Assembly (NCBI GenBank): GCA_965113315.1
Contig: OZ220370.1
From: Podarcis vaucheri
Lineage: Eukaryota
Length of the DNA stretch: 64,000 nt
Direction: 5' to 3' (one strand)
Under the pieces are notes generated by a model. The model was not told the DNA's origin. It made no database searches and saw only the letters and a list, made by a program, of their open reading frames with translations. The position numbers were made by a program, and so were the translations under genes. Below, piece after piece: positions 34,396 to 55,902 of this stretch; position 1 is the stretch's first letter; each line of letters starts with the position of its first letter.

Positions 34396-34401
34396 TTTAT
34401 T
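34396..34401 (-). terminator. PEX2: Candidate PEX2 polyadenylation signal AATAAA
   Basis: TTTATT on the + strand about 230 nt downstream of the PEX2 stop. Confidence 0.55.
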
Positions 34402-34628: not shown

Positions 34629-35546
34629 TTAATGTGTATCTACCTCTTTCATTTCTAACTTATACTTTAATGGCTGCAGATCTTGCACCTCTGTGCCACA
34701 TTTAGGACAAGTAAAATACAAATCAAATAAGTAGTTGCTTTTAATACAATAGTAACAAAAAACATGTGAACAGCCAATGGTGTGAGGCAGAGTGGGCCAC
34801 TCTCCACACAGAGAACATTCCTTGCAACATGTTGCTGAATTATTTTCATTTCTGGTACCCCCTGAAATAGGTAATGACCAAGAAGAGACTTTGAGTTTGA
34901 GCTTTTGCATGTTAATAAGTGGTAAAAGAAAAATAAGAAATTCAGCAAACCCATGCCACAGGAGTTCCCTGTTTGTGTATTCAAATCCAATCTGACGGAC
35001 ACTCTGCGGCTGGCAGAACACTGATCTGATTCGTAAAATACGTTCAGTGAGTGTAGCAAACTTTCCCTTCTGAAGAAAAGCGAGGAAGTTCAGCAATTCA
35101 CAAAGCCTGATGAGCCCAAACACTATGTTAATAAAGTACTTTGTCTTCCGGAATGACTCCAATGGACGATTGCTAAATAAACCGTAACACCTTTCTTCCA
35201 GCCATTTCCCACCGACGGTGCAAATAAGGTACCAATATTTCTGTTGCTTGCTCAACGCCTGGTATTTCTGCATCTGGGATAAGTCGTTCTTGTACTGAAT
35301 GTTCAGAATAGCTTGCCCCACGGTTGCATTCTTGGAGTAGACAGTGAATCTCCACAAAAAAAGCCACAAGGAGGCTTTAAGCTCTGGTTCAAAGCGAGCC
35401 AACAGTCCGGGTTTAAATCCCTGAAAACAGCGAGTAAACTGGGACCAAACCAGCTGTTCCAATGCTTTGTTCAGTTCAAGGGCATCAAGCTGACTTATTC
35501 TAAGCACAGGAGTCACTTTCTTGCCATTGTCATCGCCAGATGCCAT
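34629..35546 (-). CDS. PEX2: Peroxisome biogenesis factor 2 (RING E3 ligase), 305 aa, single coding exon
   Basis: [28 protein letters not shown] (Pex2/Pex12 N-terminal domain) and C3HC4 RING CSLC..CSH..CYYC..CPKC. ATG at 35546. Acceptor TCTTCTTTTATCATAG ends at 35564, 17 nt upstream of the ATG. Confidence 0.97.
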
Positions 35547-36905
35547 TGTCAACACGTGGCTTTCTATGATAAAAGAAGAGATTTAAAGATATATATTATT
35601 ATCATATTAATTTAAATTACAATTTATTAGGCTTTAAAAGAAGTATTTCATGTTGATAACAACTTTGTGAGCTAGATCACCCAAGAATTCAAAGCTGGGA
35701 AAGTGCAACTTACCCCAAGGTCATTCAATGGTAAACAGAGGTTTGAAACCCTGAGTTTGCTACCCTCTCCTATTAGTTCTCCCAGAACAAACACTGTATA
35801 TACATACCCAGCGACAGTAATGCTCACATAATTTTCACCCTATATGGTTGGTATTAATCTTTCAACTGAAGCTTAGAATGTGCAATCAACAATTAAATTT
35901 ATAATTAAATGTGAAGCATGGTGCAATAGGCTGCACACACAAACACCAATTCCTTTTTTATTTTTAAATAGTTTTCTCTCAACCCTCCACACTTCCCCAG
36001 AAAGATAAGTATTTGGTTTTAGGAAAAAGGCAAAAAAAGCTTATTCCAAACTCTCTCTCTCTCTCTTTAATGGCTATTTCATAGGTGCAAGTGTTCCCTA
36101 AGAAGATCACAGCACTTCCTATGGCGGAAGTTATTATCAAATATGAAAATTAAGAGGAACTTCTTAGGGGAGGAATTGTATTGCAGTTAAAATAGTTAAC
36201 ATGCCTTCAATGTGGAAGTTGGGTATATTAAGTAGACATATGGGTAAGATAAAGAAGAAATTGTTGCCACATAAGCACTTGCCATACAAAATGATATGGA
36301 AGAATGTGAATGAAAAGCATGCATGAGAGAAGGTAAGCGTATCAAATTAATATACATAACAGTGTAGCAGAGACTGTGACAAACTTTAGGTACTTAAAAA
36401 GAGAATTTTAGCTTCCTTTAAACTAAAACCAACATTCAGACGAAAGCTGCTTCCTTGCAAGAAAGCATCAGGTGTTGCTTGTGTTTTTTTGCAGGGAGCA
36501 TGCAGAGCACTGGCTATATCTGCTGGATGCCACCATCGGCCAGCATGACCTGTGTACACGCTCCAATATCCCTTGCAGCTAAGCACTGCAAGGGACAATG
36601 GGGTAATGATGGGAATGTCCTTTTGCAAGTGAGATGGAGGAATGCTTGCTGGTGCTGTTGGGAATCCCAGGGTTTTCTGCAACATACAATGAGGACCAGG
36701 GGATCTATGGCAGAAGAACTGCTAGGTTGTATTGTGCTAAACACTGGAATAGATTCTTTGAAATCTGGACAGAGTTCTGCACTCTACTGATGTCATGATG
36801 GTTCAAGCCCGCGTCAGTTGAGGTGGTGTATTTATTTTTCATCTGGTGATGGACAGCTGGTGACCTTGCAATACCTTGGTCTCAGGCTTTCAGCACTGTG
36901 TAGAG

Positions 36906-37041
36906 CAGGCGCCCCCAAACTCGGCCCTCCAGGTGTTTTGGGGCTAAAATTCCCATCATCCCTGACCATTGGTCCTGCTAGCTAGGGATGATGGGAGTTG
37001 TAGTCCCAAAACACCTGGAGGGCTGAGTTTGGGGATGCCTG
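36906..37041. mobile_element. Palindromic hAT MITE
   Basis: Almost the whole element is an inverted repeat (CAGGCGCCCCCAAACTCGGCCCTCCAGGTGTTTTGGG / CCCAAAACACCTGGAGGGCTGAGTTTGGGGATGCCTG). TSD GTGTAGAG/GACTAGAG. Confidence 0.85.
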
Positions 37042-37599
37042 GACTAGAGGCTGTACATTTTAGGCAGTTGCCTCCTATTTTTCCATTCTATACAAGCACA
37101 ACTTCCTGCTGTCAGTCAGCAATCAGTCTCATTAATTCCCTCATGGTCTTAAATGGAACTGAACCAGTCAATTGCTTTTATGAAATGTGAAGATGGCTCA
37201 GAGATTCAAGACTTCTCCCAGAAACGGTGCTAGGTCCACATGTGGCAGAACAGTGTGCTTAACTTATAAAAATGTTTGAACTGGTATGATTAAATTTTCT
37301 GCTCCAATTATTCACAGTGCACCATCACTATGCACAGAACGTTACAGAGTACAAGAGAGGAAGTCCCTGCCTTGAGGAGGTTACAATCTAAAATCTGACA
37401 ATGGGGAAACAATGAATCTATTCATGAGGAATTCCCTGGGTTCACTTTCATCTCAGACCAGCAGGCATAGCTAACACAATTTTATCTGCTTGTTTTGATT
37501 TTGGACTAGATTGCTATAAATTACTTGGAGAAGAATACAAGGGCTGTTCAACCATGGCAGGAAAAGAAGGTGGAGCTCAAGCAGGGCAAGTTATTCTTA

Positions 37600-38760
37600 G
37601 GCAACCCTTGTCCACTGCACAACCCATAGAATCCATCTCACTGTAAATGATCTAAACAGTGTTAAGTTATGTGTGTAATACAGCACGCACAATTGAAGCC
37701 AACCTTTTTTCTGTGAGAGCATCCAAAGACAAAATCTAATACCCAACATACCAATGTTGTGTGAAGCATGATGGACTCCAAAATACAAGAGTGTATCTGC
37801 AGAAACTTACACAAGTATGGTCCCGCAACTCATAACATCATGTAACACCAAGACAACTTGCTGTGTGGATCACAAACACAGACTTTTATTTTCAGTCTTG
37901 TGATCATAAACGAACATTCTTTCATTTATTCTTTCATACAGACAGTTCCCCGAGCTCTATAAAGATAGATGTAATGGAAATGAAAGCATATATACAAGCG
38001 TTGCTGGAAACACAAGGAAGCTTTAGCACAACAATAGAGAAGTGCAAGAAACTTGCAGATGAAGTTGATGTAGAACTTAAAACACCTAGAGAAGCAACAC
38101 AACAGCAAAACTGTGCCGATCAACCCAACCAATCCACAGAAGAGTTCTACCGTTGGTCCATCAATATTCCCTACCTGGATTCGCTTATTACCTGAGATAT
38201 TGGGACACTTTTCTGTCACTAGGTTGCACTGCATAACCCATCATGATGAGCTTCACCAATAACAGTGAACTAACCTGCATAGAGTTTGCTAAAACGACTA
38301 TGATCACAGGTGTACAGCATTTTTTGTGGGGGGGAATACTTTAAAACTCATGTCAGTTTCCTTCAGGATCTTTACAAACTGAAACTGTTGGGGATGAATC
38401 ATTGTGTGAAATATGCAACAAGAGTCTTTAAACTACTGAACTATACTGAACCATTCCTTGCTATTTTAATGGCCATCCATACAGCACTTTCCCTTCCAGT
38501 TATAACATGCAGTTATGACTGATCCTTTAGCACTCTGTGCAGGGTGAAGAAATGGCGATGTACGACAATGAGTGAAGATCGATCGTCTGGCTTGTGTTTG
38601 TGGAGTGACCATGGAGAAAAGTTGAAGACCTATCCCAAGGAGAAATTTATAAAAGAAATGATTGATTGTTTTGGCCAAGACTCTCAGAGGCTCCAGTTTT
38701 TGTTTGAACGATGATCCACTTTGTATTATATTTTCCTTTATGTTATGGACAGGCAAGCAT
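37600..38760 (+). pseudogene. Decayed hAT transposase (THAP12/ZMYM1-like C-terminal half); boundaries approximate
   Basis: Broken frames EEFYRWSINIPYLDSLI, ALSLPVITCS and SFSTLCRVKKW..TTMSEDR (hAT dimerisation-domain motifs) with stops and frameshifts. Confidence 0.75.
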
Positions 38761-39757
38761 TAACAACAAATAAATAAATAAATAAATTCTGACTAGTTTC
38801 AGACCTTATGTCTGTTGTTCACTACAGCCAAGGCAGATTCTGTGTAAAAGGTGTGAAATTCAGCCTTAGGGGTTTTTAATTTGGTTTAGAATCCTACAGT
38901 ATTGTTGTTCAATGGAAAATTTGAAGCTGTGTGTCTTTCTCCTGCCTTAACTCTGTTATTGTTAAATGGACAAATAAAGCAATTTGTTAGCAGTTAGTTT
39001 TGAAATGTGTAATCCCAAACAATACAGTACACCACCACGGTTTCTTGTTGCTTCTCTTCAGCACCATATAATGATGTGTGGGGTTCAGTCATATGAAGAT
39101 TGATAATATTCCATTCAACAATTTGTAGTTACAAGTCATAGACCTTGCGCCTCCACATTTATTTCTGTGGACACCCATGACACAATGGCAGTCAATATAT
39201 GTGACAAGGATTATTAAAAACAGTATACAGATGTGAAAGTTGTAACATATCTATATCCCTAACTCAAACAACACATTGCATATCATTTCTAACACTAACA
39301 TGCCTTATGGTTATACAATTGCTTTTGCTATAAATATGCTATAGTTCTCTAGGTGTGGCTAGTTTTCCATAATACAATGGAGATTCTGTGCAACCTCTCA
39401 AAATAAAGATTATGCAATAAAGTAGGTTTTAAAGAGGGAGGGGAAATATAGTAAAAGGGGAATGTGACCAGAGAAAACGAGCGACTCATAACTCAATTCT
39501 ATGATTTCCTAGAGGAGGCATGACGGAAACATTTTATCTATGCAGACATACCTCCCTGGTTCTGTTTATCAAAATTATTTATGTAATCTTTAAGTGAGTT
39601 GCTACTGTGAAGTATACAGAGACTATATACAATAAGCCCACAACTTGTGTACATTCATCTTCATGCGCATGGCAATTTTCTTAAAAGAAGGGGTGGAGTT
39701 CCAGGATAAACAATTGTGGCAATTCTACCTGCCATTGAACCCAATGGGTTGTGACTA

Positions 39758-40027
39758 CAGTAGAACCTCTACTTACAACTGCCTTCACTCGCAGACGTTC
39801 CAAGTTGCAAACACAGCAAACCCGTAAGTAACAGGCGGGTTTGCGCATGTGCAGGAGTGGCGATTGCTGTTTGCGCCTGCGCAGAAGCGGCAATCGCTGT
39901 TCGCGCATGCGCAAAAGCAGGGAATCGCTGCCCGTGCCTGCGCACAATGGCGCTTCTCCCAGCGACCCGTTTCACCATAAGAATGGTCCTCTGGAATGGA
40001 TTGTGGTTGTGAGTAGAGGTTCCACTG
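39758..40027. mobile_element. Tc1/mariner-superfamily MITE with internal TGCGCA repeats
   Basis: TA|CAGTAGAACCTCTACTTACAAC ... GTTGTGAGTAGAGGTTCCACTG|TA. About four ~30-bp internal repeats. Confidence 0.85.
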
Positions 40028-42057
40028 TATACACAATGTTGGCTTTAGGTGCGATCCCTAAAATATAAGCCCCACCTATGTTGCAGGCCTACCGTACTGA
40101 ATTCTGTTCAAAATGCTTCTAGAAAGGGGGTTGTCTATGTTCCAGGCATCCTCCCAGACAAGATCAGTCACGATAGACAAATTTTGCTTAAAATCAGTTG
40201 GTCAACCATCACTAGACCTTTTAACAAGCTGAAGAGTTTTAGTGGCCTCAAAAAAACCCCACAACACTTATGTAATTGTATTTTTTTTTAACTGTCTTGG
40301 AAGCTTTTTGGATGAAAAGTGGCATAAACATGCTTTGAATAAGATAAACAAATTGGCTGGCACTCCAAAGAACGGAGCGTAAGACTTGGAACCTCCCCCC
40401 AAATCTGCCCTGTAATACATTCCTTTGCAGGAATGTACATTCCTGGGTGAAGCAAGTTTAGAAACTCATTGTCCTAGAACATCTCAGGGCTTAAAGAGGA
40501 GATAGCGAAAAGTTAGATACAGTCAGTATATCTCCTCCACTGCCATGGGCTTGAGGCTAAGATAATAGAGGCTTGCTTAAGGTCAGCTAGTTCCAGAGAG
40601 TTTGTGGCAGAGATGAGATTTGAATCAGCAACTTCCTGACCCACAACTCACACTCTTACAAACAGCACCACACCAATTTTAATTATATTATGCCCTATGA
40701 AGCTGAGAGATATTCTATGAAAGTACAACGCCTCTAGAAACTCCTTTCCACCATCTTAGTCAAATCACTGATAACTATAAGGCTCCAAATGGAAACCTTT
40801 AAGAATATTATCAATAGCAATGCTCTGTGAAGAGTGTGATCAAGCAAAGCAAAAAAGAATTCTTGAGGGGGGAGAAATGTTGCCAATTATCAGTATATAT
40901 ACTTTAAAATAATATTTTAAAGATGACGTGGTCCAGGTTTTAAATGTATTTGAGATGTTTCTGACCAGCTTTTCCTTGTAATGCCACACTGCTTTCCTTT
41001 CCAAAAGTAAACCGCATGCCATGTTTTTATATTTGTCCAACAGCTCTTTTAAATACAGGTAATGTAATAAATTGCTCATTTTTATTTAACTAAATTCAGG
41101 AATCCCTCTTGCAAAACATGCACTGTAAGAAAACAATTTGCTGTATATCACCAATAAAATAGGTATTTCTCCTGATATACTTTAGCATTGCTTACTGAGT
41201 ATTGTACAAATTATGAATGAATATATTTTATTTAGAAATGCATTATTGACAGAAATCTATCAATAGTAAAGTGGGTATTGTCAAGGGCCTGTCAATATTA
41301 ATGTAATTATGATTAAGGGGATAACATGGATTTTAGCTTTAATACCAAATAACATCTCCTACATTGCTGCTATCAATATAAGCATTATTATTGACCTGTT
41401 CTGAGGCTCAGAACTAGATGTATTACCATTAGGCATATTTGTCAATGCATTCTGCCTACAAAAATTCTACATTTAAATTTACAGGCCTGTAAACTTTGGC
41501 AGCAGAAATGTATGAGTTCAAGTAATCTCTAGGGTGTCATTCCCCCCTTCGCCCACTATTCTACTGTAATAAACTAATTTATGCCAATCCAATGTCACTG
41601 CCATCTCACTCCCACTCTATCTCATTTTTTAAGCATAATTAGCAGAAAACAAACAGCATTTTCATAATGGAAGGTCACACACATTCTGTTACTTAATATA
41701 TGCTGGCCTTGCATATCTTCAGGATCCAAAGCTTAGGCAGAAAAGGAAACTAATGGGCTAAAACTCCTATTGTAAGAAGTTTGACTACTGAAATCCCTTA
41801 ATTGTGTTGGCTGTGAATGCAGCAGCTTATTAGTGAACCTCTCAGTAAGTAATATTCCAATTGATTCAAACGTCTTATTATCCAAGTGCCTTAGTTCCCA
41901 AGGCCATTTACATCAGTGAGGCATGCTGATAATCTGTTAGGCACTCATCACAGTGTAAAATGCATCTCCAGCTGCCAATCAATACCACATCTCTTGTGGG
42001 CTACATTGTCTTGCTCAAACATTTTGTGGGGTCTGGGTACAGTGCTTGGAGGGGTAA

Positions 42058-42250
42058 GGGAAAGGGCTGTAGTGATAAGAACATCTGCTTTGAATGCAGA
42101 AGGCCACAGCTTCAATTCCCCAACATCTCCAGGTAGCGCTGGGAATGTTCCCTGTCTAAAACCCTGGACAGCTGCTGCCAGTCAGTGTAGGCAATGGTAA
42201 GTTAGATGGACCACGGATCTGACAATATAAGCTAGCTTCCTTTCTTCCTA
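42058..42250 (+). mobile_element. tRNA-Ala-type SINE (Squam2-like)
   Basis: Homologous to 52927-53125 (CATCTGCTTTGAATGCAGAAGG..CATCTCCAGGTAG..CTGCCAGTCAG..CTTCCT). Confidence 0.75.
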
Positions 42251-42744
42251 AGGAGCACAGTTACACAGGGACAGAGAACCTCTGGCCCTCCAAATGCTGG
42301 AAGAGTTCAGCCAAGATGGCTACGACTCAGAAATCGGAGTCTACCAACTCAGGAGGTCCACAGGTTTCACATCCCTGGTTTCCATCATGACCTATTCCTG
42401 TGTCACCTCTGCTGGCATTAGCTGAAGACTTCATTTTGAAAGCTTTTTTTTAAAAAAACAGGTTATCATAAATTTAGTATATAGAGCGTAACTCTAAAAC
42501 ATTTCCAAGCAGGACCCACCTCTGTAATGAACATTGCTACTGTTTCTGATGACAGAAAGGCAAACAAGACTTAAAAAGAAAGAGGGAGAGGAAATCTGAA
42601 GTGTCGATTTTCCAGCAGAAATGCATTTTGTGGAATAAGTTGTAAAATGTATGAATTGTTACAGGTGATGAAATTGAACTAAATCATGTCACCAAACTAG
42701 AACAAAAGCAGGCACAGAAAATCACTTGCACTGATGGTTTTCAT

Positions 42745-45623
42745 CAGTGCTTTTTTCATTTCTTGTTTTGGAGAAAAAACGATGCCGGTACTCACCATGA
42801 AGTTGTTAGAGTAAGTGCCACACTTTTGATACATCCTCCGATGTACCTTCATCTTCTCTACATCGCTTCCTGCTTTTTGTATCAACTGCATTATGATGTC
42901 CTTGTAGCAGCCATGATTCAACATATTTGGTAGGACTGAATTGAGTAAGAGGTGGTCCTACCATCCTGATGAACATCAGAGAAGAAACTGTCCGAATAAC
43001 CAGAGATGATCTTGATGAAGTTACTGTAAGATTCATCTGAGATAATCCTCTTTCACATTCAGTCGAAGATATTGCAATTGTGCTTAAAGCGTGCATTAGA
43101 GGAAGTAATTTGTCCGGGACTTCATTTTCTTCAAGATATTCATGAAAGCCAAGAATTGTTTCATTTTCATTTAAGCAAAACTTTTGTGCTAGTTTTCTAA
43201 TTTCAGTTTCACCAAAGGTTAATTGCTTTCCAGGATTTTCTGGCCAATATTTGGAATCTAAGACCTTGGCACATTCAGGCAAATCAGCATCATCTCCTTC
43301 AAGTATACACTTTCTAACAGTTTCTTTCAGACTTTCATAGAAAGCAGATGAACTTATTGTAGGGGTAAGTTTTTCATTTTTGTGGAGCTCACTCCCTTTG
43401 AACTTCATAGTCTTCTGACTCTCAAGAGCAACATTATAGTATGGACCAGGATTTTCAATTCGTTCTTCAAAAAGTTGAACTGTGTTCCTTATCTTCCTGT
43501 CTGCTGTAAACAAATCAATATTTTGCTCTTGTAAATCCAAGTTTAGTTCACTGAGAACTTGGAGAGCATCACACATAAGACCCAAATCGAGAACAAATTC
43601 ACATGATGTTATTGTCCGTAAAAGACCCTCATAAAGACAGCGATCTGTTTTGCTTCTTCTCCTGTCTTCTTTTGCCTCCTGAAAGTGATAAACCAGTGCT
43701 TCATAATCTTGCCAAACTGCGAAAACTGTGCAAAAGCTAGAAGCAACCCAGCGGGTGCTTAAAATCCTTCCAATTTTCAGAAGCTGAAGTTCTAGAGTTG
43801 CTGCACATTCCTCCAATTCCCTAGCATTCTCGGGTGAAGCGTGGTAAGTCACATAAAGTTTGTCCATAAAATTCTTAAAGTGATTAACTCCAACCACTTT
43901 GTTCACTGTGTCACTGACAGACAATTCCAGACGATGGTTAGCACAACGCCAGAACATAACACTCGGAAATTTTTCTTTTATTAACCTTTTTACACCACCA
44001 CGTGCGCCAAACAACACTGCACCACCATCACAAGTGACAGACAATAAATACTCCTTTAAATAATCTTCTGAGATTCCTAGGGACTCAAGATGACTGATTA
44101 ATGAGCTTAAAATTCCTCTTGCTGTTGTATCTTGTAACTCAATCAAATCTAAGAAAAGACTTACTGGAGCCGAATGTTTGGGAAGAACTACGCGAATACT
44201 AACAATCAAAGTTATTCTGTTATTCACTGTTGTTGATTCATCAATAATTAAGGACATTTTGTTCTTAGAGTTCACTATGTTGCTTATTAATGTTTTTCTC
44301 ATTTCATCTGCAATATGGTTTAAAATATTAATGCAGGCATTTGTAGAGTGAAAGGTATATCCCATGTCTAGGCCATTAAGTTCCTGTAAATTTATTTCAT
44401 CCTCAAAGTTGTTAAATGCTTGATTTTTCTTTGCAACTTTGTAAGCAGTTCGAAACACTTTTGTTGTGTTTAAGATGACTTTATCTAACTTTTCACTTTT
44501 AGACTCAGATTTTATCCTTTCAGCTGCTTTGTGAGCGCCACTTTCCTTGTGTTCGAAAATCTTTTTTCTTAAAGACATTAACTGTTGTTTTCGAGACTCT
44601 CCAAAATGACTAATTTTGCAATTGGCCCACTCTACTGAAATTTTCACTCCCATCCGTTTTTCGACAGGAAGACTTCCGATATCTCGGCACACTTTGCAGC
44701 CCAACCTTTTATTGTTGACAAAGAGCCACTCATTTCTCTGACAGAAGTCATTTTTCTGCAATAGTGTCCAACATTCGGGCCAATCTTTGCCTGAACTTCC
44801 ATCCTCTTGACCACATGTATCTTCAGTGTTAGTTTTGCGATGTTTGAAAGGATCAGAAGTTGATTCAACAATTTCTGCTGCTTCTTCAGCCTTCCTTTTT
44901 TGACTTAGTGGAACAAAGTAACTACTTAAGGTACTCATTATGAAAAATGATTGCACTGATTTAACTTGGATCACATGTACAACTGCCTCATCATGCCTTC
45001 TGCAAAGCGGCTATACTGAGCATAGGTCTGAAAAAGAAAGAGAGGCTGGCGTTAGAAGAATTCCAGAAGCAGAACTTGGAAAGACAATGGAGGGGTCCCA
45101 CAAAGAGGGCTTGTTTTGGCGCTGGCCATGGCACCAACTTCCCCGGCCACACTGCAGGAATTGGACTAGATGACCCTTAGGGTCCCTTAAAGCCAGATGG
45201 CCTCCCTCCCTCCCATTCTCATATTACCTGGGACTTTTGCCGCACTGGCTCCGGTGACTTTGGCGGCTTCGGCAGCTCCTGCGCCCACCCTGCCACGGCC
45301 ATCATGAATGCTGCCAGTGAGGCGACCAAGCCGCACATGGCCAACAGTGGAGTGCAGTGCGTTGCTGGGGATGCACATCACACTGTGCTGCCTGCTCTTG
45401 CGCTCCACAGGGAGCGGGACTCATGCGCTCTGGCAAGCCACGCTGCTGCTGACAGGAAGCAGCAGCTGTTATCGGGCCCAGGAACAGCTCCCGGAGGGCG
45501 GTGGCAGCCGGGCCCTGGAGTGGCACTGCCCATGCCATGTCTCCTCATGCGGCCAAGCATCTCCAGGAAAAATAAAGTGCCGGTATTAAGGATCATTGGG
45601 TACCGCCAGAAAAATAAGCACTG
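42745..45623 (-). mobile_element. Full-length hAT DNA transposon (2879 bp; Tip100/Zaphod-like ends) in the inferred PEX2 5'-UTR intron
   Basis: Left end CAGTGCTTTTTT (42745), right end AAAAATAAGCACTG (45623). Perfect 8-bp TSD GTTTTCAT at 42737-42744 and 45624-45631. TGCCGGTA motif near both ends. Encloses the transposase ORF. Confidence 0.93.
42806..44938 (-). CDS. Intact hAT transposase, 710 aa (KIAA1586/ZNF862-like)
   Basis: First ATG at 44938 (MSTLSSYF). N-terminal CKVC..H..H Zn-finger-like motif, IIDEST (D233), TCDGG (D304), CANH (CxxH), STRW, TECER (E629), and basic NLS-like KRK / KSRKR. No stop or frameshift. Confidence 0.88.
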   Translation of the reverse strand: MSTLSSYFVPLSQKRKAEEAAEIVESTSDPFKHRKTNTEDTCGQEDGSSGKDWPECWTLLQKNDFCQRNEWLFVNNKRLGCKVCRDIGSLPVEKRMGVKISVEWANCKISHFGESRKQQLMSLRKKIFEHKESGAHKAAERIKSESKSEKLDKVILNTTKVFRTAYKVAKKNQAFNNFEDEINLQELNGLDMGYTFHSTNACINILNHIADEMRKTLISNIVNSKNKMSLIIDESTTVNNRITLIVSIRVVLPKHSAPVSLFLDLIELQDTTARGILSSLISHLESLGISEDYLKEYLLSVTCDGGAVLFGARGGVKRLIKEKFPSVMFWRCANHRLELSVSDTVNKVVGVNHFKNFMDKLYVTYHASPENARELEECAATLELQLLKIGRILSTRWVASSFCTVFAVWQDYEALVYHFQEAKEDRRRSKTDRCLYEGLLRTITSCEFVLDLGLMCDALQVLSELNLDLQEQNIDLFTADRKIRNTVQLFEERIENPGPYYNVALESQKTMKFKGSELHKNEKLTPTISSSAFYESLKETVRKCILEGDDADLPECAKVLDSKYWPENPGKQLTFGETEIRKLAQKFCLNENETILGFHEYLEENEVPDKLLPLMHALSTIAISSTECERGLSQMNLTVTSSRSSLVIRTVSSLMFIRMVGPPLTQFSPTKYVESWLLQGHHNAVDTKSRKRCREDEGTSEDVSKVWHLL

Positions 45624-47108
45624 GTTTTCATCCAAGACCCAGTTTCTGGCTATAAGACCCTTTACCAACCTAGTGCTCCCCATATGTTGTTGGACTATAA
45701 CTCTCACAATGTGCTGGCTGCAGCTGATGAGAGTTATAGTCCTACAACATCTGGAGCCTACCAGGTTGGCCTTGACCTTGAACATGGCCTGAAGGTATAC
45801 AACGCAACACCCCTGCAGAAGCAGCAGGTTAAATTCTGGTCAGCGGCTGGACATCAGATTACCTGGGAACCCTGTGTGCTGCAAGTTCCATCATGGAAGA
45901 GAGATGTCAATGTAATAAAGATAGACTATTTATCAACATGATAATTTCTTAGAGTAATTCCTACTGTGCGTGATATTAAAAGATTTCTCAAAATCATTTG
46001 TATTGAGTCCATGCCAAGGAGCCTGAGGAGTATTGAGGAATACAGTTGCATGAGAATTCAGCTGCCAAGTAAGAAGACTTCTATCAAAGCTACAGTGTGC
46101 AAGACAAACTCATTGTTCTTTGTTTAAAAGGGACCACATTGGCTGTCTGTAGGCTGCCTCCACTCTACGGGTTTCCAACCCAAACCACAATAGAGAATCT
46201 CCTTAGAGATGCATACTGTACAATGTATTTTTCTATCTTCAGTCTCATCAAAGATAGGTACGTTACCTCAACAAAAGCCTCACTAGAAGCCCAGAGTATA
46301 TTATCTCTTAATCACTGTAAAATTAGTTTGCCATTACTATGCCATTAGCTTAAATAACCTTAGAAAAGATTAATTTCATATTACATTTTAAATTTCTATA
46401 TTCTTCAATTAAGTGCCTACTATCGTTTGAAAGAATAATAGAGACTTAGGTTCTCTAACCATTCTGCATAGCTAATAATACATAACATTTATATAACTTT
46501 CCATGTTTGAATCCCTGAAAATGTTAACTGATTATTTTCATGGTATTCCTGTGAGGCATTGAAGAATTATCTCTATTTTACATGTGGAAAAGAGGACTTC
46601 AGAACATATTGCATCAAAATTTGGGGAAAAGACTAGAAGGAGAAATCACATGATTTCCATGACTATATTCATTTTCTTAAGTCACATAATCTTTTACTTA
46701 GAATTTTAGTCATTTAATTTACGGTTCTTTACTGGATATTGTAAAAAGGATAAATAACTATGGGAAATAGAAGGGAAATATCTAGGTTTGTGAATTTTAG
46801 CTACCTTGATAAAGAGGACTGGACTGATAATACCCCTTTTAATTTTTCATGAAAATGCATTATGTTGCCTGGAGATAATCAACTTTCTGTACCATGCAAG
46901 AAGTATCTTACTATGCTAGACATCATTGATGGCTATGTCCACAATAATGCTTAGGCCGGAAATGGTAGTTTGGCAAAAATACTGGATTTGTAACACATTT
47001 CATTTCAGAAGCTATTATTGCTGCTACTAGTACTGTTACTATGATTTTGCCCAATGGCAGTAGCATTGATACCTGTAAGACCAACAACTCAAGTAGTAAG
47101 ATCCTGAG

Positions 47109-47332
47109 CAGGGGTCAGCAACCTTTTTCAGCCGTGGGCCGGTCCACCGTCCCTCAGACCATGTGGTAGGCTGGAGTCGACTATGCCCCACAAATAACTC
47201 AGAGATGCATTTTAAATAAAAGCACACATTCTACTCATGTAAAAACACACTGATTCCCGGGCCATCTGTGGGCCGGATTTAGAAGGTGATTGGGCCGCAT
47301 CCAGCCCCCAGGCCTTAGGTTGCTTACCCCTG
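47109..47332. mobile_element. hAT (Charlie-like) MITE
   Basis: CAGGGGTCAGCAACCT ... AGGTTGCTTACCCCTG. TSD ATCCTGAG/ATCTTGAG. Confidence 0.88.
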
Positions 47333-47663
47333 ATCTTGAGTTTTACATAACTTTTATTCTGGCTAAATGTCCTTTCCCGCCTTACCCCACACCATCCTGT
47401 TGCCCCAAGAGGAACTGGTAGCTTTGGTATATCAACTCAAATCCTTTCTACTGGGCACAAACTTACTTAAGGCAAATAATTTTTTTGAAATAGGTAACTG
47501 TAAGACAGTTGGGTGTCTGTTCTGCCTTTTACCAACAATCTTCATCTCTTCAACCTCGCTTCTGTTTAACATCTAGCCGGGTGCACCGCTCTGGGAAACA
47601 TAAAAGGCGGTTCAGTCCTAATAAGGGTATTACATTACTAATAGAGAGATAGTTGATCTAAAC

Positions 47664-48012
47664 CAGGGGTCGGCAAGGTTTACCGGCCATGGGCCAGATC
47701 ACTCCCACGGAGATCATCCTGGCACTGGACTGGCATAGCGCGACGCCGGATAGCGCATCTGCGCATGTCCGCGGCGCCAGAAATTGCTTCTGCGCAAGCC
47801 TAGACGCCAAAAATCCCGCCTGCGCAGAAGCGATTTTCGGCATCTGGACATGTGCAGACATGATTTCCAGTATCTGCACCTGCGCAGATGCAATTTCTGG
47901 CACCACTTGGTTAGTCCCCGTGCCGTGCTGCTTTAGCGCAGCATGCGGGGAACTCACCGAGTGGGTGGCTTGGTTCAGGGGTGGTTCGTGGGCTGCACGT
48001 TGCTGACCCCTG
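47664..48012. mobile_element. hAT (Charlie-like) MITE with internal TGCGCA repeats
   Basis: CAGGGGTCGGCAAGGT ... ACGTTGCTGACCCCTG. Perfect TSD ATCTAAAC at 47656-47663 and 48013-48020. Confidence 0.9.
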
Positions 48013-48054
48013 ATCTAAACAGAAATGGAAAACTCTTTCCTGTACACACACACA

Positions 48055-48287
48055 CAGTGGCACCTCGAATTTTGAACATAATCCATTCCAGAAGACTGTT
48101 CAACTTCTGAAACGTTCAAAAACTCAATATGGAAGCCTCGATACCATAGGGAAACTCAAAAAGGAAGCCGCATGGCACGTTCAGCTTCTGAAAATCGTTT
48201 GAAAACTGGAGGTTACTTCTGGGTTTTCGGCACTTGAAAGCCGAAATGTTCCGACTTCTGAGATTCTCAAAAACTGAGGTTCCACTG
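48055..48287. mobile_element. Tc1/mariner-superfamily MITE (inverted relative to 1939-2180)
   Basis: CAGTGGCACCTC ... GAGGTTCCACTG|TA. Internal TTACTTCTGGGTTTT is the reverse complement of AAAACCCAGAAGTAA in the first copy. Confidence 0.8.
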
Positions 48288-51200
48288 TATATATCATTGT
48301 AATTTATGAGTGTGTATGATACAAGTAACCATTTGACATTCTTGGTCACTGAAACCTCCCGTGTTGGTTTTTTTAAAAATCAATTATAAGTACATTCTCT
48401 TCCCAGAGTTTTAGTTGGTGGTCTTTGTACCGTGATACACAAACACACAGACTAAACCTCTGCTTTCCATGTACTTTTAAGACACATTCTGCCCTCCTGA
48501 AAGTGCAGCTCTCCATTTGCGGGACGGCTGCTAACAGGAAGGTGGCGTCAGTAGTGGCAGGACACAGAGCGGCAGACACAGAAGGCGGTAAGAACACACA
48601 GTGGCACCTGGGCTAAAGCTATAGCTAAAGAAGGTTGCACTGATCTGCTGTAATTCTCGTTTCAGAACAAAGGCAAGGCTGACCTGACCATTGTTTAAAG
48701 CATCCACCACTGAAACTAGGTTTTACGCGGGCATTTGAAATCACATAGTCCAGACTGAATGATTCTAAACAAAGCACTGCTTTTGGCTCAGCTGTATCAA
48801 ATGGTCGTATTAGTTTTGTTTTAAGGAGGCTTAATAACGTATCTGTGAGACCAAATTTTCGTCTTGTGTTTTGGAATGAGTCTCTTAAGGGTAGTTGGAA
48901 TTCACTTTTCAGATAACTGCTTTCTTCTTATTGCCAAATGTAATTAGTGTGATATGACAGTATAATACTGACTGTGGTTGGTTGTTTTGTTTTTTAAATT
49001 CCTAAACATGCCAATGAAGTACTGTTTAATTTATTTCACATTTTTCTCAGTATTCTCATAATTTCCATCTCACTGTCTCTTGGCAGTAAGATGGAGCAGT
49101 TTTCTGCTTCCTGCTTAGTTTGCTATCAATAAGAGATTATTGGGGTGGATAAAAAAATAGTTACATTACATAATATTTATTAAATTGTGTTGAATACAAA
49201 CATTCATAACTTGATTCTTTTTCAAATCTCAGGTCAGACCTGTTTTCAAACATACTACACTAAATCCTGTGGGTTTTTTTACATAAAAGAAAAAATAGGG
49301 AAAATGTTTTGACTTCAATAGTCGAGCATTAAGAACATGATACAATAAATCATGCACTGTGTTCATACTTTCTGACAATCATAAATATTTATGACTATTA
49401 ACCAAACAACAAGGACATTTACTTTTATCATAACTTAGAACAGAGGGATATTTGAAAGGACTTCCACCATGTTATATACAGAAGTTCTTGAATGAATTAT
49501 TATGGTATTCAATATGAAGACTTCTGAACATGCATTAACAGGATGCTGAAGTAGCTTTAGATATCCACAGCATTTCTATCTCAGGAAGTCCTGAATTATC
49601 ACTGATAAATGTCTCAATAAACTTCCAAAGAAGTTCAGAACCTAGTGCACCAAAAGTTAAATCTGAGTCTTCTGCTGTGAAAATCCACACAGATCTCACC
49701 AAGCTCAAGAACAAAGGATTTTTTATATATTAAAAAATAGCATTCTATGTTATATTCTAGTTAGCATCAATGGTAAAATCGCACTCTTGTAGAAGACAGT
49801 AACCTGATGTTCCTGGTTCCTTCTATTAGTAATCTCACGAAATTCTGAAGTCTGATATCCCCCATATAGGAATTTGTCTGCACAAAGCTAAATGGTAAAT
49901 GCAGAAGGAATGAGCATTCATTAAACATATTTGCCCCAATCTGGGGGCCTCAGTGTGCACATCGAGTTATGTGCACATTGAGACTTCAGTGATGGAGAAC
50001 GCTATATAATCCCCCATCCCTTTCTTCACCATTTAAGTTAATGGGAGAGCTCCTGCTGACAGTGAATTCCACGTCCATATCAGCAGACCTGCAACTCCCA
50101 TGAAATTTACTGCCTCTGAAAACCTAACGCTCTAAAATTCTGTTTCCCGTATAAACAAACAATCCTATATTCCTAAGCAATCCAAATGAAAATCATCTTG
50201 GAAAGTAACTGATCACAGCAACAAATAATATAAATTGCTTAACCACCATCTTAAAAAAAATAAAATTATGCATGCTTAGATTTGCACAAAATGAGTCAAT
50301 TTCCATCAATGACAAAATGATAAGAATGATGTGCTTCTCCCCCCACCCCACCCCACTTTTTAATAAAGATAGCAAGGCTTAGAAGGGGGCTTATACGGTG
50401 CACTTTTTAGCTCACTCAAATCTTTATCTTAAGGAAATAATTTAAGGGAGGTACCATGGGCTTTGAAAGGAAATTAAAATGTGCCTGCTAATGTAGCATT
50501 AATTTCCTTATAGCAATTTTGCTTGGATCAAGTCTGTGCACTGTGCATGCTTTGAATATGTGATTTCAAACTGATATTTCCTTTCTCGCATATGTTACCA
50601 CATTTAAGAAGTCTGAGATATTCCTTCCAAGGAATACATGACATGTGTGTGTAACATACACACATACGATATGAAAATTGACTCTTTGGGTACCATCAAG
50701 ATTTTTTTTTTTAGAGCACATCTTCGTAATTGTTTCCACTCCTGCGCCAACGGTTTTAACGCTGCCTTCAAAACCTTGAGTGGTAGTATTCACCACCTTG
50801 TTTTTCTTCGTGTTAGCTGAGCTGTGCAGCATGCATAGTAAATTCAGATTTTGAATAAGGTCATTGAAGGAAATAAGGTCAGCAAAGGCAATCTTGCTCC
50901 TGGTGGGACTGCTGCTCGCATGTTATTAAAAAGAAAGAAAAAAATGGAATCCCACCTGAAAAATTTAATTAATCGTTTCAAAATTCCTCTAACTCTCCTG
51001 AACAAGATCCTCCAGATTCACTTTGATTTTGCTTTAGGCAAATTTCAGTGACAAGTCTATTTGAGAACTTTTCCACAGGACTAATGAATACATGCATAGA
51101 TATACACACACTTATTCTCTTCCTCCCAACTCCGGAATCATTTGCTGGAAGGAAGTGGGTCGTGAAAGAAGTTCCTCAGATGACCACACCATTGTTCAAC

Positions 51201-52220
51201 CTACTTGTAGAATATTTGCTAAGGCACTCCCAAACATGAAGTGGGCCTGTAAGGAGAATTCACACACACAAGACTTTGCTATGAGGTAACTGTGATTCTG
51301 TGTCTATTTTGGTGCCACCTGTGAATGAAAGGAGTGCGAGTGTGTTTGTATGTAGGGCATTGTAATTCTCTACAGTCTGGTACCTAAAACCTAGATACTG
51401 ACTTGTATAGATGTGCAATTTTCCATTCTTAGTGTAATTACATAACTGTTAAAAGCACGTTTGTCTTAAGAGATATTCTTTAGGTAACTAAACACAACAT
51501 GCCAGACTTGTTCAAATTAACACACCTCTTCACAAATGATTTGAGTATGAATCATTGAATGCAGAATAATTTGGGATTTGCAATATGCCAACTCTGGAAT
51601 ACTAGGGGTATGCAAGGAAGACATCTCAACAAGGTTACCTAAGGGTTTTTTCTCATTCTTTAATGTGTGAAGGAGGAAGCAAAGCATCTGAAAACAATGT
51701 TCACAGGAAAGGATCAATGGCATGGATTTCTCAATGGCACTCCACTGGACTCATGCATCTTGAACAGCTGTTCAACTTCAAATACAGGCAACAAGTGGGA
51801 AGTGCAACTAAATGTTGGGGCAGGGAATGCTCTTTCTCATGACTGGTTGGCTGCTATCCTGCATTCTTCTCGTATGCCCCATTCCATTCCTACCCTCCGC
51901 CAATTACTTGGGCATACTCAGTGTTCAGAGGGCTGATTTGCGGTCACTCCAGTCTGTGTGTGTGTGTGTGTGTGTTTTACTTTTGCAGACTTTGGGACCC
52001 TTGCAATGCTGCTGCTACTTTCCAGGGCATGGGCAGTGCAGTTCCATCTATGTAAAGACCAACACAACAGATATTTATGTTCACTATTAGTACAGCAGCC
52101 CTGGTGCCATCCAGATGTTGTTGGACTCCCATCATGTCCAACCAGCATGAACAGGAATGATGTGCGTTTCAGCCCACAACATCTGGAGGTCACCAGGTCA
52201 GATAAAGCTGATACACTGTA

Positions 52221-52418
52221 CAGTGGAACCTCGGGTTACAGACGCTTCAGGTTACAGACTCCACTAACCCAGAAATAGTATTTCAGGTTAATAACTTTGC
52301 TTCAGGATGAGAACAGAAATTGTGTGGCAGTGGCGCGAGGCTCCATTAGCTAAAATGGAATCTCAGGTTAAGAATGGACTTCCAGAATGAATTAAGTTCT
52401 TAACCCAAGGTACCACTG
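52221..52418. mobile_element. Tc1/mariner-superfamily MITE
   Basis: TA|CAGTGGAACCTCGGGTTA ... TAACCCAAGGTACCACTG|TA; same subfamily as 62585-62826. Confidence 0.88.
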
Positions 52419-52926
52419 TATATGATGGCAGGTGCTGATTTCTGTGTCTTTCATTCGTTTTCACCCATCACTACTTTAGGGACATGAAAAATGTAGGAGC
52501 AGGGCTTTGAAACTAACTGTAAATTAGTTTCAATTAGAGGTTTGTGGTTATTAATCAGTTGTTGTTTTAAAGCCACATGTAGCACGGCTAAGTCCCTCCC
52601 TCACCCACCCCCTAGGAATCCGTCATAGGAATGTCAGTATGGTACAGTGGTGTTAAGACTACAATTGGCTGGATCCAGGTTCAAAACATCACTCAGCTGC
52701 GAAGAAGCTCACTGGGTGACTTTGGATTAGGCATTCTCTCATAGGAACTGTAAGGAAAAACCACTTGCTGAATCAGAACAAATCCAGCATTATGTTCCCA
52801 CAAAGATGCCTCTGGTGAAGGCCACAAGCAGAACCCTAGGAACTAGCATTCAAGTCAAGCCTAACTTGCATCCATGTTGCAAGGATAAAAAGTTGTGTTA
52901 GGAAGAAGGATCACCCATACAACCCT

Positions 52927-53125
52927 GGAAGGGCCACAGCTCAGTGGCAGAGCATCTGCACTTGCAAGCAGAAGCCCCCAAATTCAATCCCCGGCATCTC
53001 CAGGTAGAGTTGGGGGAGACCCCCTGCCTTAAATCCTGCAGAGTCACTGCCAGTCAGCATGTAGACAATACTGAGCAAGATGGGCCAATCGTCTGACTCT
53101 GTATATGACATCTTCCTATGTTCCT
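52927..53125 (+). mobile_element. tRNA-Ala-type SINE (Squam2-like)
   Basis: AGCTCAGTGGCAGAGCATCTGC..TTCAATCCCCGGCATCTCCA tRNA-Ala-like head; CTTCCTATGTTCCT tail. Confidence 0.8.
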
Positions 53126-53559
53126 TGAGAAAAGGGGACAAAGAAATGTAAACAAGCAGATACATGGCAGGCAGAAATCCAACCGATAACTCTTTTTACA
53201 AAGCAGGCAGGGCTATATATATTTATATATAACAAAGAAACCTGGTTTGCAGAGCGAGGTAACCCAACTTCCAAGGATTTTGCTCCCTTATTTATTTCAT
53301 TAAGATTGTGAAGGTGGGGAAACCAACCTCAAAGCGGTTTACAAAAATCCACAAAATTCAGTTTCAAACATGCAAAAGTCAGAGCACTAAAACAGATGAA
53401 AAGTACCTCAAGTTTCTAAGCATCTGGGTTAGGCTTGAGAGAACACGAAGGCTTTCAGCAGGAGCTGGAAAAAGCGTACGGTGAGGTGGAGCCTACTTGA
53501 CGTCAATAGGCAGGGAGTTCCAACGAACAGGCCTCTTCAGGCCTCTTGTGTCCCAGAAT

Positions 53560-54300
53560 TAAGGATGCCGCTGAGCTCGCCTTAAGCCCCATTTTGGGAC
53601 CCCCACCCCACCTTGACGCTACGCAACCCCTCTCCCCACCGACTGCCAGCCTCCCCCCTCCCCCATCCATCCCCCTCCTCCGTCACGGACTGACCTCTCT
53701 TTTCCTGAGGGAGGGGCTACTCCGCGAGACCCCGCCGCCCCGTTTCCCGCGCCGACCGAGGGGAAGAGACCATGCAGTTCGGTGACCCGGATTTCACTTC
53801 GGGCGTCGAGTTCTCCTTCGGGGATTCCTAGAGCAGCCGAGCTTGCTTCCACCACGCCGCGCGCCTTTCCGCTCTCCTCATCTCTATGGTGCTCCTCCGT
53901 CCTTTGCTTTCCTCAGCGTTGTAGGTAACTGCCGACAAAGCGCAGAGCGTCTCCCCAGCTGAAGCAGGAAATACTAATGAGATGCCCTTTACGTCTTTCC
54001 TAGAGCGGCTCCCCTCTCCCCCCCCCCGCAGCTTCGCGGTTCTTGTTCTCTGCTTTTGCCCATAGAGATAGTAAAAACAAAAATAAATACAAGAGTGGCA
54101 CGTCGTCCAAATCTCTGGCTTGAAAAGACCTTTTGATTTCTCCCTAAGAGCAAAGTGAGAGCTCTCCGTAGAAAAGAACACAGGAAAGAAACACAGGATT
54201 TTGTAATACGGGTGCGATTGGGCAGTAGGCACACCTCGCCCCCGCCCTCAAAGTAATATATAGGAAATGCTGAACTCCCAGGCTCCAAGTAACGTCTTTT
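53560..54300 (-). promoter_or_regulatory. PEX2: CpG-rich probable PEX2 promoter and non-coding exon 1
   Basis: Clearest non-TE CpG-dense segment upstream of PEX2. GC box near 54240, CCAAT (minus) near 54217, ETS-like CCGAAGTG near 53795. Candidate donor GAG|GTCAGT with the exon ending at 53695. Link to PEX2 is inferred. Confidence 0.7.
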
Positions 54301-55764: not shown

Positions 55765-55902
55765 TAGCTGAGTTGGTAGAGCATGAGACTCTTGATCTCA
55801 GGGTTGTGGGTTTGAGTCCCATGTTGGGCAAAAGATTCCTGCATTGCAGGGAGTTGGACTAGATGACCCTCATGGTTCCTTCCAACTCTACAATTCTATG
55901 AA
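55765..55902 (+). mobile_element. tRNA-Lys(CTT)-derived SINE with CR1 3' tail (best copy)
   Basis: TAGCTGAGTTGGTAGAGCATGAGACTCTTGATCTCAGGGTTGTGGGTTTGAGTCCCATGTTGGGC head, then AAAAGATTCCTGCATTGCAGGGAGTTGGACTAGATGACCC..ATTCTATG. Confidence 0.85.

Follow-up and report, generated by a model that had tools for sequence, protein, structure and literature searches.

A hAT transposase reading frame bounded by splice sites in the putative 5' intron of lacertid PEX2: a candidate optional exon

Background

The locus described here raises the question of whether a complete transposase open reading frame (ORF), lying in the putative 5' intron of PEX2 in lacertid lizards, is expressed as an optional exon of its host gene. 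The window, the whole stretch of DNA that we analyzed, consists of 64,000 nt of Podarcis vaucheri sequence (assembly GCA_965113315.1, contig OZ220370.1), and the features described are all on its minus strand. The best explanation overall, which we consider fairly probable, is that the PEX2 intron of lacertids holds a hAT element whose ORF is an optional PEX2 exon at an early stage of domestication.

Results and Discussion

PEX2 and its putative 5' intron

The PEX2 coding exon (34629..35563) follows an acceptor, TATCATAG/AAAG, that places the exon start at 35563 and scores 10.6 bits with a simple weight matrix. The coding sequence (35546-34629) specifies a protein of 305 amino acids that matches the Pfam family Pex2_Pex12 at 5e-41, contains a RING finger, and is 98–99% identical to lacertid PEX2. 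A CpG island at 53401..54200 (GC 0.52–0.63, CpG observed/expected 0.67–0.96) is the putative PEX2 promoter and non-coding exon 1, and a putative exon-1 donor (GAG/GTCAGT, exon end 53695, 7.6 bits) lies at its edge. This island (53.4–54.2 kb) is the only non-repeat one of the region and matches no repeat in the rest of the window. Two further CpG-rich stretches, at 39.6–40.2 kb and 47.5–48.1 kb, were considered as alternative promoters and set aside as probably repeat-derived. Each includes short pieces (61–74 nt) that partially match other parts of the window, and the former is internally repetitive. Across the putative 5' intron, 18,130 positions were scored for donors and acceptors with the same weight matrix.

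A complete hAT element with an intact transposase ORF

This intron contains a complete hAT transposon of 2,879 bp (42745..45623), oriented in the same sense as PEX2 and recognized by its terminal inverted repeats (TIRs), its target-site duplication (TSD) and the fold of its ORF. The same 8-mer, ATGAAAAC, occurs as a perfect match on the 5' side (45624..45631) and the 3' side (42737..42744) of the element. The TIRs read CAGTGCTT and then [A/T]TTT, and the two ends, CAGTGCTTATTT and CAGTGCTTTTTT, agree at 11 of the first 12 positions. These TIRs were not reported by an automated repeat search with a seed of 8. The element thus displays hallmarks of the hAT superfamily, namely an 8-bp TSD, short TIRs, a transposase core and catalytic motifs. 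Both transposon ends are still intact, and the loss of ends that characterizes a domesticated transposase gene has not occurred. Retention of TIRs and TSD is unusual for a domesticated gene.

The ORF (42806..44938, with the ATG at 44938 and the TAA at 42808-42806) encodes an intact, KIAA1586-like hAT transposase of 710 amino acids. Six residues that are invariant in 43 family members (D233, D304, C332, H335, W397 and E629) are all present in the lizard ORF, as is R396, which is near-invariant (at least 90%) in the same set. E629 aligns with the glutamate of the Hermes ...SER.FS motif in the family profile, which matches the Hermes C-terminus (E 2e-4). The catalytic D/D/E, CxxH and RW motifs are thus retained at the sequence level. 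An AlphaFold model of the ORF (pLDDT 82) matches the Hermes transposase (E 1e-10, TM 0.59–0.66 on the target), and the protein is predicted to fold like Hermes, with an RNase-H-like core bearing an insertion domain and a C-terminal dimerization region. The Pfam domain Dimer_Tnp_hAT is sub-threshold for the lizard ORF alone and was detected in 8 of 12 relatives.

The best named matches, which are 35–62% identical to the ORF, are annotated as KIAA1586 or 'E3 SUMO-protein ligase KIAA1586-like' (Pfam PF27073, PF14291 and PF05699). Relatives found in Logan are 71–79% identical. Some relatives of the ORF, in a frog and geckos, are annotated as fused to KRAB or SCAN domains.

Splice sites framing the ORF

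An earlier note on this DNA had described an acceptor and a donor that would make the ORF a cassette exon, and both are present as described. The acceptor (45028..45057) consists of a branch-point-like TTCTAAC at 45057-45051, a tract of 15 pyrimidines, and a CAG ending at 45028, so that the exon would start at 45027, 89 nt before the ATG. The donor (42788..42798) reads ATG/GTGAGT, with the exon end at 42796, 10 nt past the TAA and 51 nt from the 3' end of the element. Both sites lie, as had been claimed, between the putative exon-1 donor at 53695 and the PEX2 acceptor at 35563 on the same strand, and scoring with the weight matrix ranked each of them first in the intron. The acceptor scores 14.3 bits (rank 1 of 18,130 acceptor positions) and by consensus counting is the only site on either strand of the 64-kb window with 15 of 15 pyrimidines and a YAG. 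The donor scores 10.1 bits (rank 1 of 18,130 donor positions) and is one of two intron sites with at least 8 of 9 consensus matches. The joint chance that the best site of each kind adjoins the ORF is ~1e-5.

The sites delimit a proposed cassette exon of 2,232 nt (42796..45027) that contains the whole transposase ORF and is drawn from the sequence together with RefSeq models. At the sequence level the arrangement is that of a cassette exon, with a flanking acceptor and donor between host sites on the same strand. Since the strongest splice signals of the intron frame the ORF, it is probably expressed as an optional PEX2 exon. Both flanking sites are within the hAT element itself, which the note had not stated for this finding. 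Given how strong and how close to the ORF they are, the spliceosome could treat the entire ORF as such an exon.

The 89-nt leader (44939..45027) contains four upstream ATGs, opening uORFs of 10, 7, 6 and 1 codons, as well as an in-frame TAG. Judged from sequence, the four ATGs should damp translation of the transposase.

A proposed route to a transposase mRNA

We propose that a full-length KIAA1586-like hAT element inserted in sense orientation into the PEX2 5'-UTR intron before Podarcis, Lacerta and Zootoca split, and was then fixed. The element contains the very strong acceptor 89 nt before the ATG and the consensus donor 10 nt past the stop, which may have been borne by the transposon or have evolved after it inserted. 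Skipping of the exon would give the normal PEX2 mRNA. Inclusion would give an mRNA in which the transposase is the first long ORF and the PEX2 coding exon supplies the 3' UTR and the poly(A) signal. The transposase-derived protein would then have been kept by purifying selection. The element is, as far as its sequence indicates, without a poly(A) signal of its own: the earlier report of no AATAAA after the stop holds, and both AATAAA and ATTAAA are absent from the transposase stop down to 41343.

The earlier note had further suggested a bicistronic mRNA that escapes nonsense-mediated decay (NMD), with PEX2 as its second cistron. The link between the ORF exon and PEX2 is supported indirectly by the RefSeq isoform X1 models and by a model with a joint coding sequence in P. 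lilfordi, both described below, and the mRNA would be bicistronic in a structural sense only. Translation of PEX2 as a second cistron is unlikely, since ribosomes are not expected to reinitiate after an ORF of 710 codons, and the included form would therefore be an mRNA for the transposase in which PEX2 serves as 3' UTR. A stop codon within 50–55 nt upstream of the last exon junction escapes NMD that depends on the exon junction complex (EJC). With 42796>35563 as the last junction, the stop lies 10 nt from it; with a candidate 50-nt mini-exon (42520..42569; acceptor 9.1 bits, donor 8.8 bits) included, the distance grows to 60 nt. NMD escape would thus be anticipated only where 42796>35563 is the last junction. 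The exact junctions, the promoter used, escape from NMD and a regulatory trade-off with PEX2 are points that we infer, as is a splicing 'switch' between PEX2 and transposase.

Are the splice sites a family trait?

A first metagenome scan for relatives of the ORF returned no loci, and a second, with a profile, returned 80 (33–56% identity). Of 45 loci, 7 have a donor in the first 40 nt past the stop, compared with 7.8% expected, an enrichment that is not significant (P=0.06). In three of the closer loci (two 52% identical, one 40%) such a donor is found 10–19 nt past the stop. Strong acceptors within 150 nt before the ATG are not enriched in distant relatives (P=0.82) and are not a family-wide trait. 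It is conceivable, though we think it unlikely, that the element is built as a portable cassette exon: an autonomous hAT with a strong acceptor before its ORF, a consensus donor just past it and no poly(A) signal would depend on a host for promoter, splicing and 3' end, and its stop, near the donor, would evade EJC-dependent NMD. One copy would have been kept in lacertid PEX2 since before the three genera split, with ends still usable.

Orthologues and database models

In Podarcis muralis, P. raffonei, Lacerta agilis and Zootoca vivipara, the RefSeq entry 'PEX2 isoform X1' is the orthologous ORF of 710 or 711 amino acids, and 'isoform X2' is the true PEX2 of 305 or 308 amino acids. The record XP_028592483 (P. 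muralis) is the 305-aa PEX2 in version 1 and the 710-aa ORF in version 2. In a P. lilfordi model, the transposase and PEX2 ORFs are joined in a single coding sequence of 1,025 amino acids, and the mini-exon described above corresponds to the linker of this fusion model. Altogether, the ORF of five other lacertids is 96–97% identical and is assigned to the PEX2 gene. RefSeq assigns the ORF to PEX2, and therefore PEX2-linked transcripts with the exon have already been modeled, though mislabeled. Older P. muralis models have 519 and 692 amino acids, which suggests broken frames in an older assembly or allele. Among the 120 matches listed, no further lacertid protein exceeds 80% identity to the ORF, which fits a single intact copy.

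The RefSeq naming under PEX2 could stem from intron-retention reads. For the window's own organism, a search of sequencing runs found only DNA, and no run recorded as RNA contained the exon. Eight runs that contain it are labeled RNA by guess only, and contig runs of related organisms with guessed labels contain 54–73% of the exon's words. As their RNA labels are guessed, these runs are not counted as evidence of expression. Our literature search for this PEX2-transposase lizard locus and KIAA1586-hAT found no description of the locus.

A possible promoter within the element

Transcription could also start in the 595-nt 5' region of the element, in which case the ORF would be a nested gene that removes a small internal intron (45228->45027) and uses its 3' donor to borrow the PEX2 poly(A) signal, the PEX2 promoter being uninvolved. 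A candidate donor for that intron (CAG/GTAATA, exon end 45228, 7.5 bits) does lie 200 nt upstream of the acceptor. However, it is much weaker than the sites flanking the ORF, the region that would have to act as promoter (45228-45623) fails CpG-island criteria, and the 5' region includes a short repeat-like piece that is also found at 55842-55881. The missing poly(A) signal of the element suits a nested gene as well, and a shared last exon alone would suffice for RefSeq to assign the ORF to PEX2. Overall we regard a nested gene as rather improbable.

Selection on the ORF

The ORF is intact in six lacertids of three genera despite at least 54 replacements, and the lizard group to which they belong radiated ~37 Mya according to one published dating (PMC7279592). 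This long survival bears on whether the element is simply a fixed copy without function, its ORF intact by chance or slow decay, its splice sites unused or used at a low, non-productive level, and RefSeq X1 a longest-ORF artifact of unspliced or intron-retaining reads. With intact TIRs and TSD and unchanged catalytic residues, the element does resemble a fairly young copy. A neutral model of the six species that considers nonsense changes only is marginal (P=0.05 for none), and at positions at least 90% conserved in the family the depletion of replacements (6 observed versus 10 expected, P=0.09) is not significant alone. However, no frameshift is found in any of the six species, and with frameshifts added the neutral probability falls to between 2e-3 and 4e-6, giving a joint P of at most 2e-3. 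Replacements also fall at family-variable positions and avoid conserved columns (Mann-Whitney P=6e-4). In addition, the highest-scoring acceptor and donor of the intron sit on either side of the ORF, and consistent multi-transcript models are found in four independently annotated genomes. A functionless copy therefore seems to us a quite unlikely account of the locus.

The sequence comparisons point to purifying selection on the ORF, and in a transposase-derived protein such selection makes early-stage domestication, with the ends still kept, the probable interpretation. Among lacertids the protein is 96–97% identical, compared with 98–99% for PEX2. A rough k-mer estimate of dN/dS, which is weak, is 0.3–0.6. 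Private changes of the P. vaucheri lineage affect two residues with at least 90% conservation in the family; one of them, A306G, is two residues from the catalytic D304.

Is the product fused to PEX2?

Models for P. lilfordi and, in Ensembl, for P. muralis splice from a weaker donor inside the ORF (42845..42850, GAAG/GTACAT, exon end 42847) that precedes the stop by 13 codons. Hypothetical exon joins were read in silico, for frame only. A transposase-PEX2 fusion protein of ~1,000 amino acids made through this donor, of the type described by Cosby et al., is very improbable: although splicing 42847 straight to 35563 would leave the frame open into PEX2 and P. lilfordi has its 1,025-aa model, an open frame is a 1-in-3 chance, the frame breaks through the 50-nt mini-exon in P. 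vaucheri, the internal donor scores ~6 bits (a hand calculation) against 10.1 bits at 42796, and in four species the RefSeq models terminate at the stop codon of the transposase. The main ORF begins and ends with an ATG and a stop of its own, and its leader contains an in-frame TAG, which sets it apart from host-transposase fusions.

Comparison with known systems and significance

The ORF as an optional PEX2 exon is probably a nascent domesticated hAT transposase, and as such a variant of the themes of ZBED6/ZC3H11A and of transposase capture. ZBED6 lies in intron 1 of ZC3H11A in placental mammals and is expressed by retention of introns 1–3 in a variant of ~13 kb (PMC2780926). The host promoter drives this alternative transcript, which was initially entered in annotation as a host splice variant, and the gene is single-copy and at the same site across species (PMC2780926). 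Like ZBED6, the lizard ORF is an intronless, hAT-derived frame in sense orientation in the first intron of a host to whose protein it is unrelated in sequence, and it too is annotated as a host splice form. Expression from the host promoter is shown for ZBED6 and proposed for the lizard. However, ZBED6 relies on intron retention, whereas the lizard ORF is a discrete candidate cassette exon.

Host-transposase fusion genes such as KRABINER, CSB-PGBD3 and SETMAR were born by transposase capture (Cosby et al., bioRxiv 10.1101/2020.05.07.082677). In the lizard, by contrast, the main product would be unfused, because the host exon that precedes it is apparently non-coding and there is an in-frame stop in the leader. 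The CSB-PGBD3 transcript is polyadenylated at a site inside the element, whereas the lizard exon has a donor past its stop and would continue into the host coding exon. Human KIAA1586, by sequence in the same hAT clade as the lizard ORF, occupies a different locus as an independent gene. The lizard ORF differs in being a separate and much younger insertion with intact transposon ends.

The RefSeq 'PEX2 isoform X1' of at least four lacertids is a hAT transposase and not a peroxin, and its name can lead comparative or expression studies astray. Should the junctions be confirmed, the locus would be a clear young example of a transposase becoming a host-expressed gene: the element is complete, yet it would be fixed at a single site throughout a radiation of lizards, with its protein constrained and its transposon-internal splice sites used. 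An unfused cassette-exon route would then be added to intron retention (ZBED6) and in-frame capture (CSB-PGBD3, KRABINER), and in these lizards the output of a transposase would be tied to an essential peroxisome-biogenesis gene.

The hAT element and its transposase

The 710-codon ORF (42806-44938; all features are on the minus strand unless marked otherwise) is carried by a complete hAT transposon of 2,879 bp at 42745-45623, within the putative PEX2 5' intron. The element termini, CAGTGCTTATTT and CAGTGCTTTTTT, match at 11 of the first 12 positions, and a perfect 8-bp duplication, ATGAAAAC, flanks the element at 45624-45631 and 42737-42744. Within the element's 5' region, 40 nt (45150-45188) recur 10 kb away at 55842-55881 with 85% identity.

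The ORF sequence alone gives only a sub-threshold Pfam match to the hAT dimerisation domain. A profile of its relatives matches the C-terminus of the Hermes transposase, including the glutamate of the ...SER.FS motif, and the AlphaFold model of the ORF (pLDDT 82) matches Hermes structures (E 1e-10). Residues D233, D304, C332xxH335, W397 and E629 are invariant across 43 family members, R396 is near-invariant (at least 90%), and all are kept in the ORF. The named relatives are 'KIAA1586-like' proteins found in reptiles, amphibians, fish, insects and a snail; the transposon clade is thus a widespread one.

Elsewhere in the window, a long ORF at 6872-8848 (+), broken by masked N runs and rich in proline, glutamine and serine, looks like the C-terminal exon of a zinc-finger homeobox gene of the ZFHX type. 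It would fit the ZFHX4-PEX2 neighbourhood of other vertebrates. The N runs lie at 7.6-11.1 kb and 19.8-19.9 kb. A 160-aa ORF at 188-670 (+) is probably a LINE fragment, as it contains a CWRC...HMWWECP motif of the kind usual at the zinc-binding C-terminus of LINE reverse transcriptases. Tandem GCGCATGCGC-type units are present at 39600-40200.

Splice sites framing the ORF

A branch-point-like TTCTAAC (45057-45051) is followed by an acceptor consisting of 15 pyrimidines and a CAG that ends at 45028 (exon start 45027); the ATG at 44938 comes 89 nt later and opens 710 codons. At the other end, a donor, ATG/GTGAGT (exon end 42796), is located 10 nt past the TAA at 42808-42806. Given the element boundaries, both splice sites are therefore within the element. 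Given the recurrence at 55842-55881, the 595 nt upstream of the acceptor may in part stem from a nested or captured repeat rather than from the original transposon. The intron itself is delimited by the putative PEX2 exon-1 donor, GAG/GTCAGT (exon end 53695), and the PEX2 coding-exon acceptor (exon start 35563). The earlier note had read this arrangement as a PEX2 cassette exon spanning 42796-45027, and the branch point, both acceptors and both donors are all on the minus strand where it had placed them. It had also claimed that no AATAAA follows the stop within the element, and indeed neither AATAAA nor ATTAAA occurs on the minus strand from the ORF stop down to 41343.

We scored every minus-strand position of the 18,130-nt intron with one simple matrix for donors and another for acceptors. 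The matrix frequencies follow published splice-site tables approximately, and so do the bit values. In the intron, the donor ranking is headed by 42796 (10.1 bits) and the acceptor ranking by 45027 (14.3 bits); the PEX2 acceptor scores 10.6 bits and the exon-1 donor 7.6 bits. Matrix-free counts give a similar picture: 45027 is the sole site with 15/15 pyrimidines and YAG on either strand of the 64-kb window, and only two donors in the intron, 42796 among them, reach 8 or more of the 9 consensus matches. An acceptor and a donor of this kind would come so close to the ORF, within 100 nt and 51 nt of its ends, with a chance of about 1e-5.

Origin of the splice sites and comparison with known systems

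Among captured transposases, the splice site used is in eight of nine cases an acceptor just upstream of the ORF that derives from the ancestral transposon (Cosby et al., bioRxiv 10.1101/2020.05.07.082677). Relatives of the ORF from one frog and two geckos are annotated as fusions to KRAB or SCAN domains. We tested both sites as a family trait using 80 metagenome loci that encode relatives with 33-56% identity. A donor at most 40 nt past the stop is present in 7 of 45 relatives' loci, against 7.8% expected, which is not a significant enrichment (P=0.06), and strong acceptors ahead of the ATG show no enrichment among these loci (P=0.82). Three of the closer loci (L001, L004 and L007) have a donor 10-19 nt past the stop.

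The closest precedent to the lizard ORF is ZBED6, located in intron 1 of ZC3H11A. ZBED6 is a hAT-derived, intronless ORF that is co-expressed from the host promoter and was at first annotated as a splice variant of its host gene (PMC2780926). However, ZBED6 is expressed through intron retention and is described as no longer able to transpose, whereas the lizard ORF is a candidate cassette exon within a complete element. CSB-PGBD3 and KRABINER resemble the lizard element in having the acceptor inside the transposon, but both are in-frame fusions, while the lizard ORF is unfused. The lizard case is set apart by the completeness of the element, the lack of fusion, and splice sites at both ends of the ORF, the donor falling after the stop.

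Orthologues and existing gene models

The best database match to the ORF (97% identical, 710 aa) is named by NCBI 'peroxisome biogenesis factor 2 isoform X1 [Podarcis muralis]'. Orthologues in P. raffonei, Lacerta agilis and Zootoca vivipara, within the cluster of this match, are also named 'isoform X1', and true PEX2 (305/308 aa) is 'isoform X2' in each of the four species. Version 1 of XP_028592483 is the 305-aa PEX2 and version 2 is the 710-aa ORF. Given that RefSeq tracks a model by its accession across versions, a single transcript model probably contains both ORFs. In P. lilfordi, a 1,025-aa model joins ORF residues 1-698 to PEX2 through a short linker. The ORF part stops at an internal donor, GAAG/GTACAT (exon end 42847 in window coordinates), and the linker maps to 42565-42500, corresponding to a 50-nt candidate mini-exon at 42569-42520 (acceptor 9.1 bits, donor 8.8 bits). 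The isoform X1 and P. lilfordi models thus already link the exon to PEX2, with its product wrongly named as a peroxin. Our literature search turned up no publication on this locus.

Two segments downstream of the element, 42520-42569 and 42251-42316, form coding tails in P. lilfordi CAI5779349 and Ensembl P. muralis A0A670II63. The internal donor at 42847 is weak and lies 13 codons before the ORF stop. On hypothetical junctions made in silico, joining it directly to 35563 would hold the frame open into full-length PEX2; via the 50-nt mini-exon the frame breaks in the window species, while the P. lilfordi model reads through. Older RefSeq and Ensembl P. muralis models of the ORF (519 aa and 692 aa) start at M192 or skip segments at approximately residues 105-123 and 421-436, which suggests indel errors in an earlier assembly, or else that the individual sequenced carried a broken allele.

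Constraint on the ORF

The ORF of the window species is 96-97% identical to those of other lacertids, compared with 98-99% for PEX2; pairwise differences number 13-25 of 698 residues and 2-11 of 305, respectively. At least 54 replacements separate the sequences of six lacertids (the window species and five others in Podarcis, Lacerta and Zootoca). Under a neutral model, 54 replacements correspond to about 79 substitutions, with about three nonsense changes expected (P of none = 0.05). Adding frameshifting indels, at an assumed rate of 0.05-0.15 per substitution, gives a joint probability of six intact ORFs of 2e-3 to 4e-6. As a separate line of evidence, family entropy is higher at the 51 lacertid-variable columns (2.19 bits) than at lacertid-invariant columns (1.70 bits; Mann-Whitney P=6e-4), and the replacements therefore follow the constraint profile of the family. 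A rough dN/dS of about 0.3-0.6, which combines replacement counts with the proportion of 31-mers present in runs of related organisms, carries little weight.

The window lineage has the most private changes (nine). Two of these, A306G (codon at 44023; two residues away from the catalytic D304) and S466N, fall where conservation across the family is 90% or higher; a third such position is changed by R472Q, common to the window species and Lacerta agilis. The changes at residues 306, 466 and 472 may reflect relaxed or shifted constraint in the window species. Diversification of this lizard group is placed at ~37 Mya in the dating quoted by PMC7279592 from Garcia-Porta et al., which would give the insertion an age of tens of millions of years.

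Proposed expression of the transposase

The best-supported reading is that the element provides the 5' UTR of PEX2 with an optional internal exon. Skipping would yield the PEX2 mRNA. Inclusion would yield an mRNA with the transposase as its first long ORF; its 3' UTR would come from the PEX2 exon, as would its poly(A) signals (AATAAA/ATTAAA at 34401 and lower coordinates). Alternatively, the transposase transcript could start inside the element: a candidate donor, CAG/GTAATA at 45228, precedes the strong acceptor by 200 nt and could define an element-internal 5' intron together with a first exon belonging to the transposon. Use of the PEX2 promoter is plausible: the CpG island at 53.4-54.2 kb is the only one without a repeat-derived look. 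The CpG-rich stretches at 39600-40200 and 47500-48100 (CpG o/e 0.8-0.9) are probably repeats and not promoters; the first is repetitive within itself, and parts of both match other places in the window over short lengths.

In the leader of the proposed exon (45027-44939) there are four upstream ATGs, with uORFs of 10, 7, 6 and 1 codons, and therefore translation of the transposase should be damped. The escape from NMD proposed in the earlier note would hold only with 42796>35563 as the final junction; with the mini-exon at 42569-42520 included, the last junction would be 60 nt past the ORF stop. The same note envisaged a bicistronic mRNA and a PEX2/transposase switch. The inclusion form would be bicistronic in structure only, and translation of PEX2 from it is unlikely, as reinitiation is not expected after an ORF of 710 codons. 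Each inclusion event would cost one PEX2-coding mRNA.
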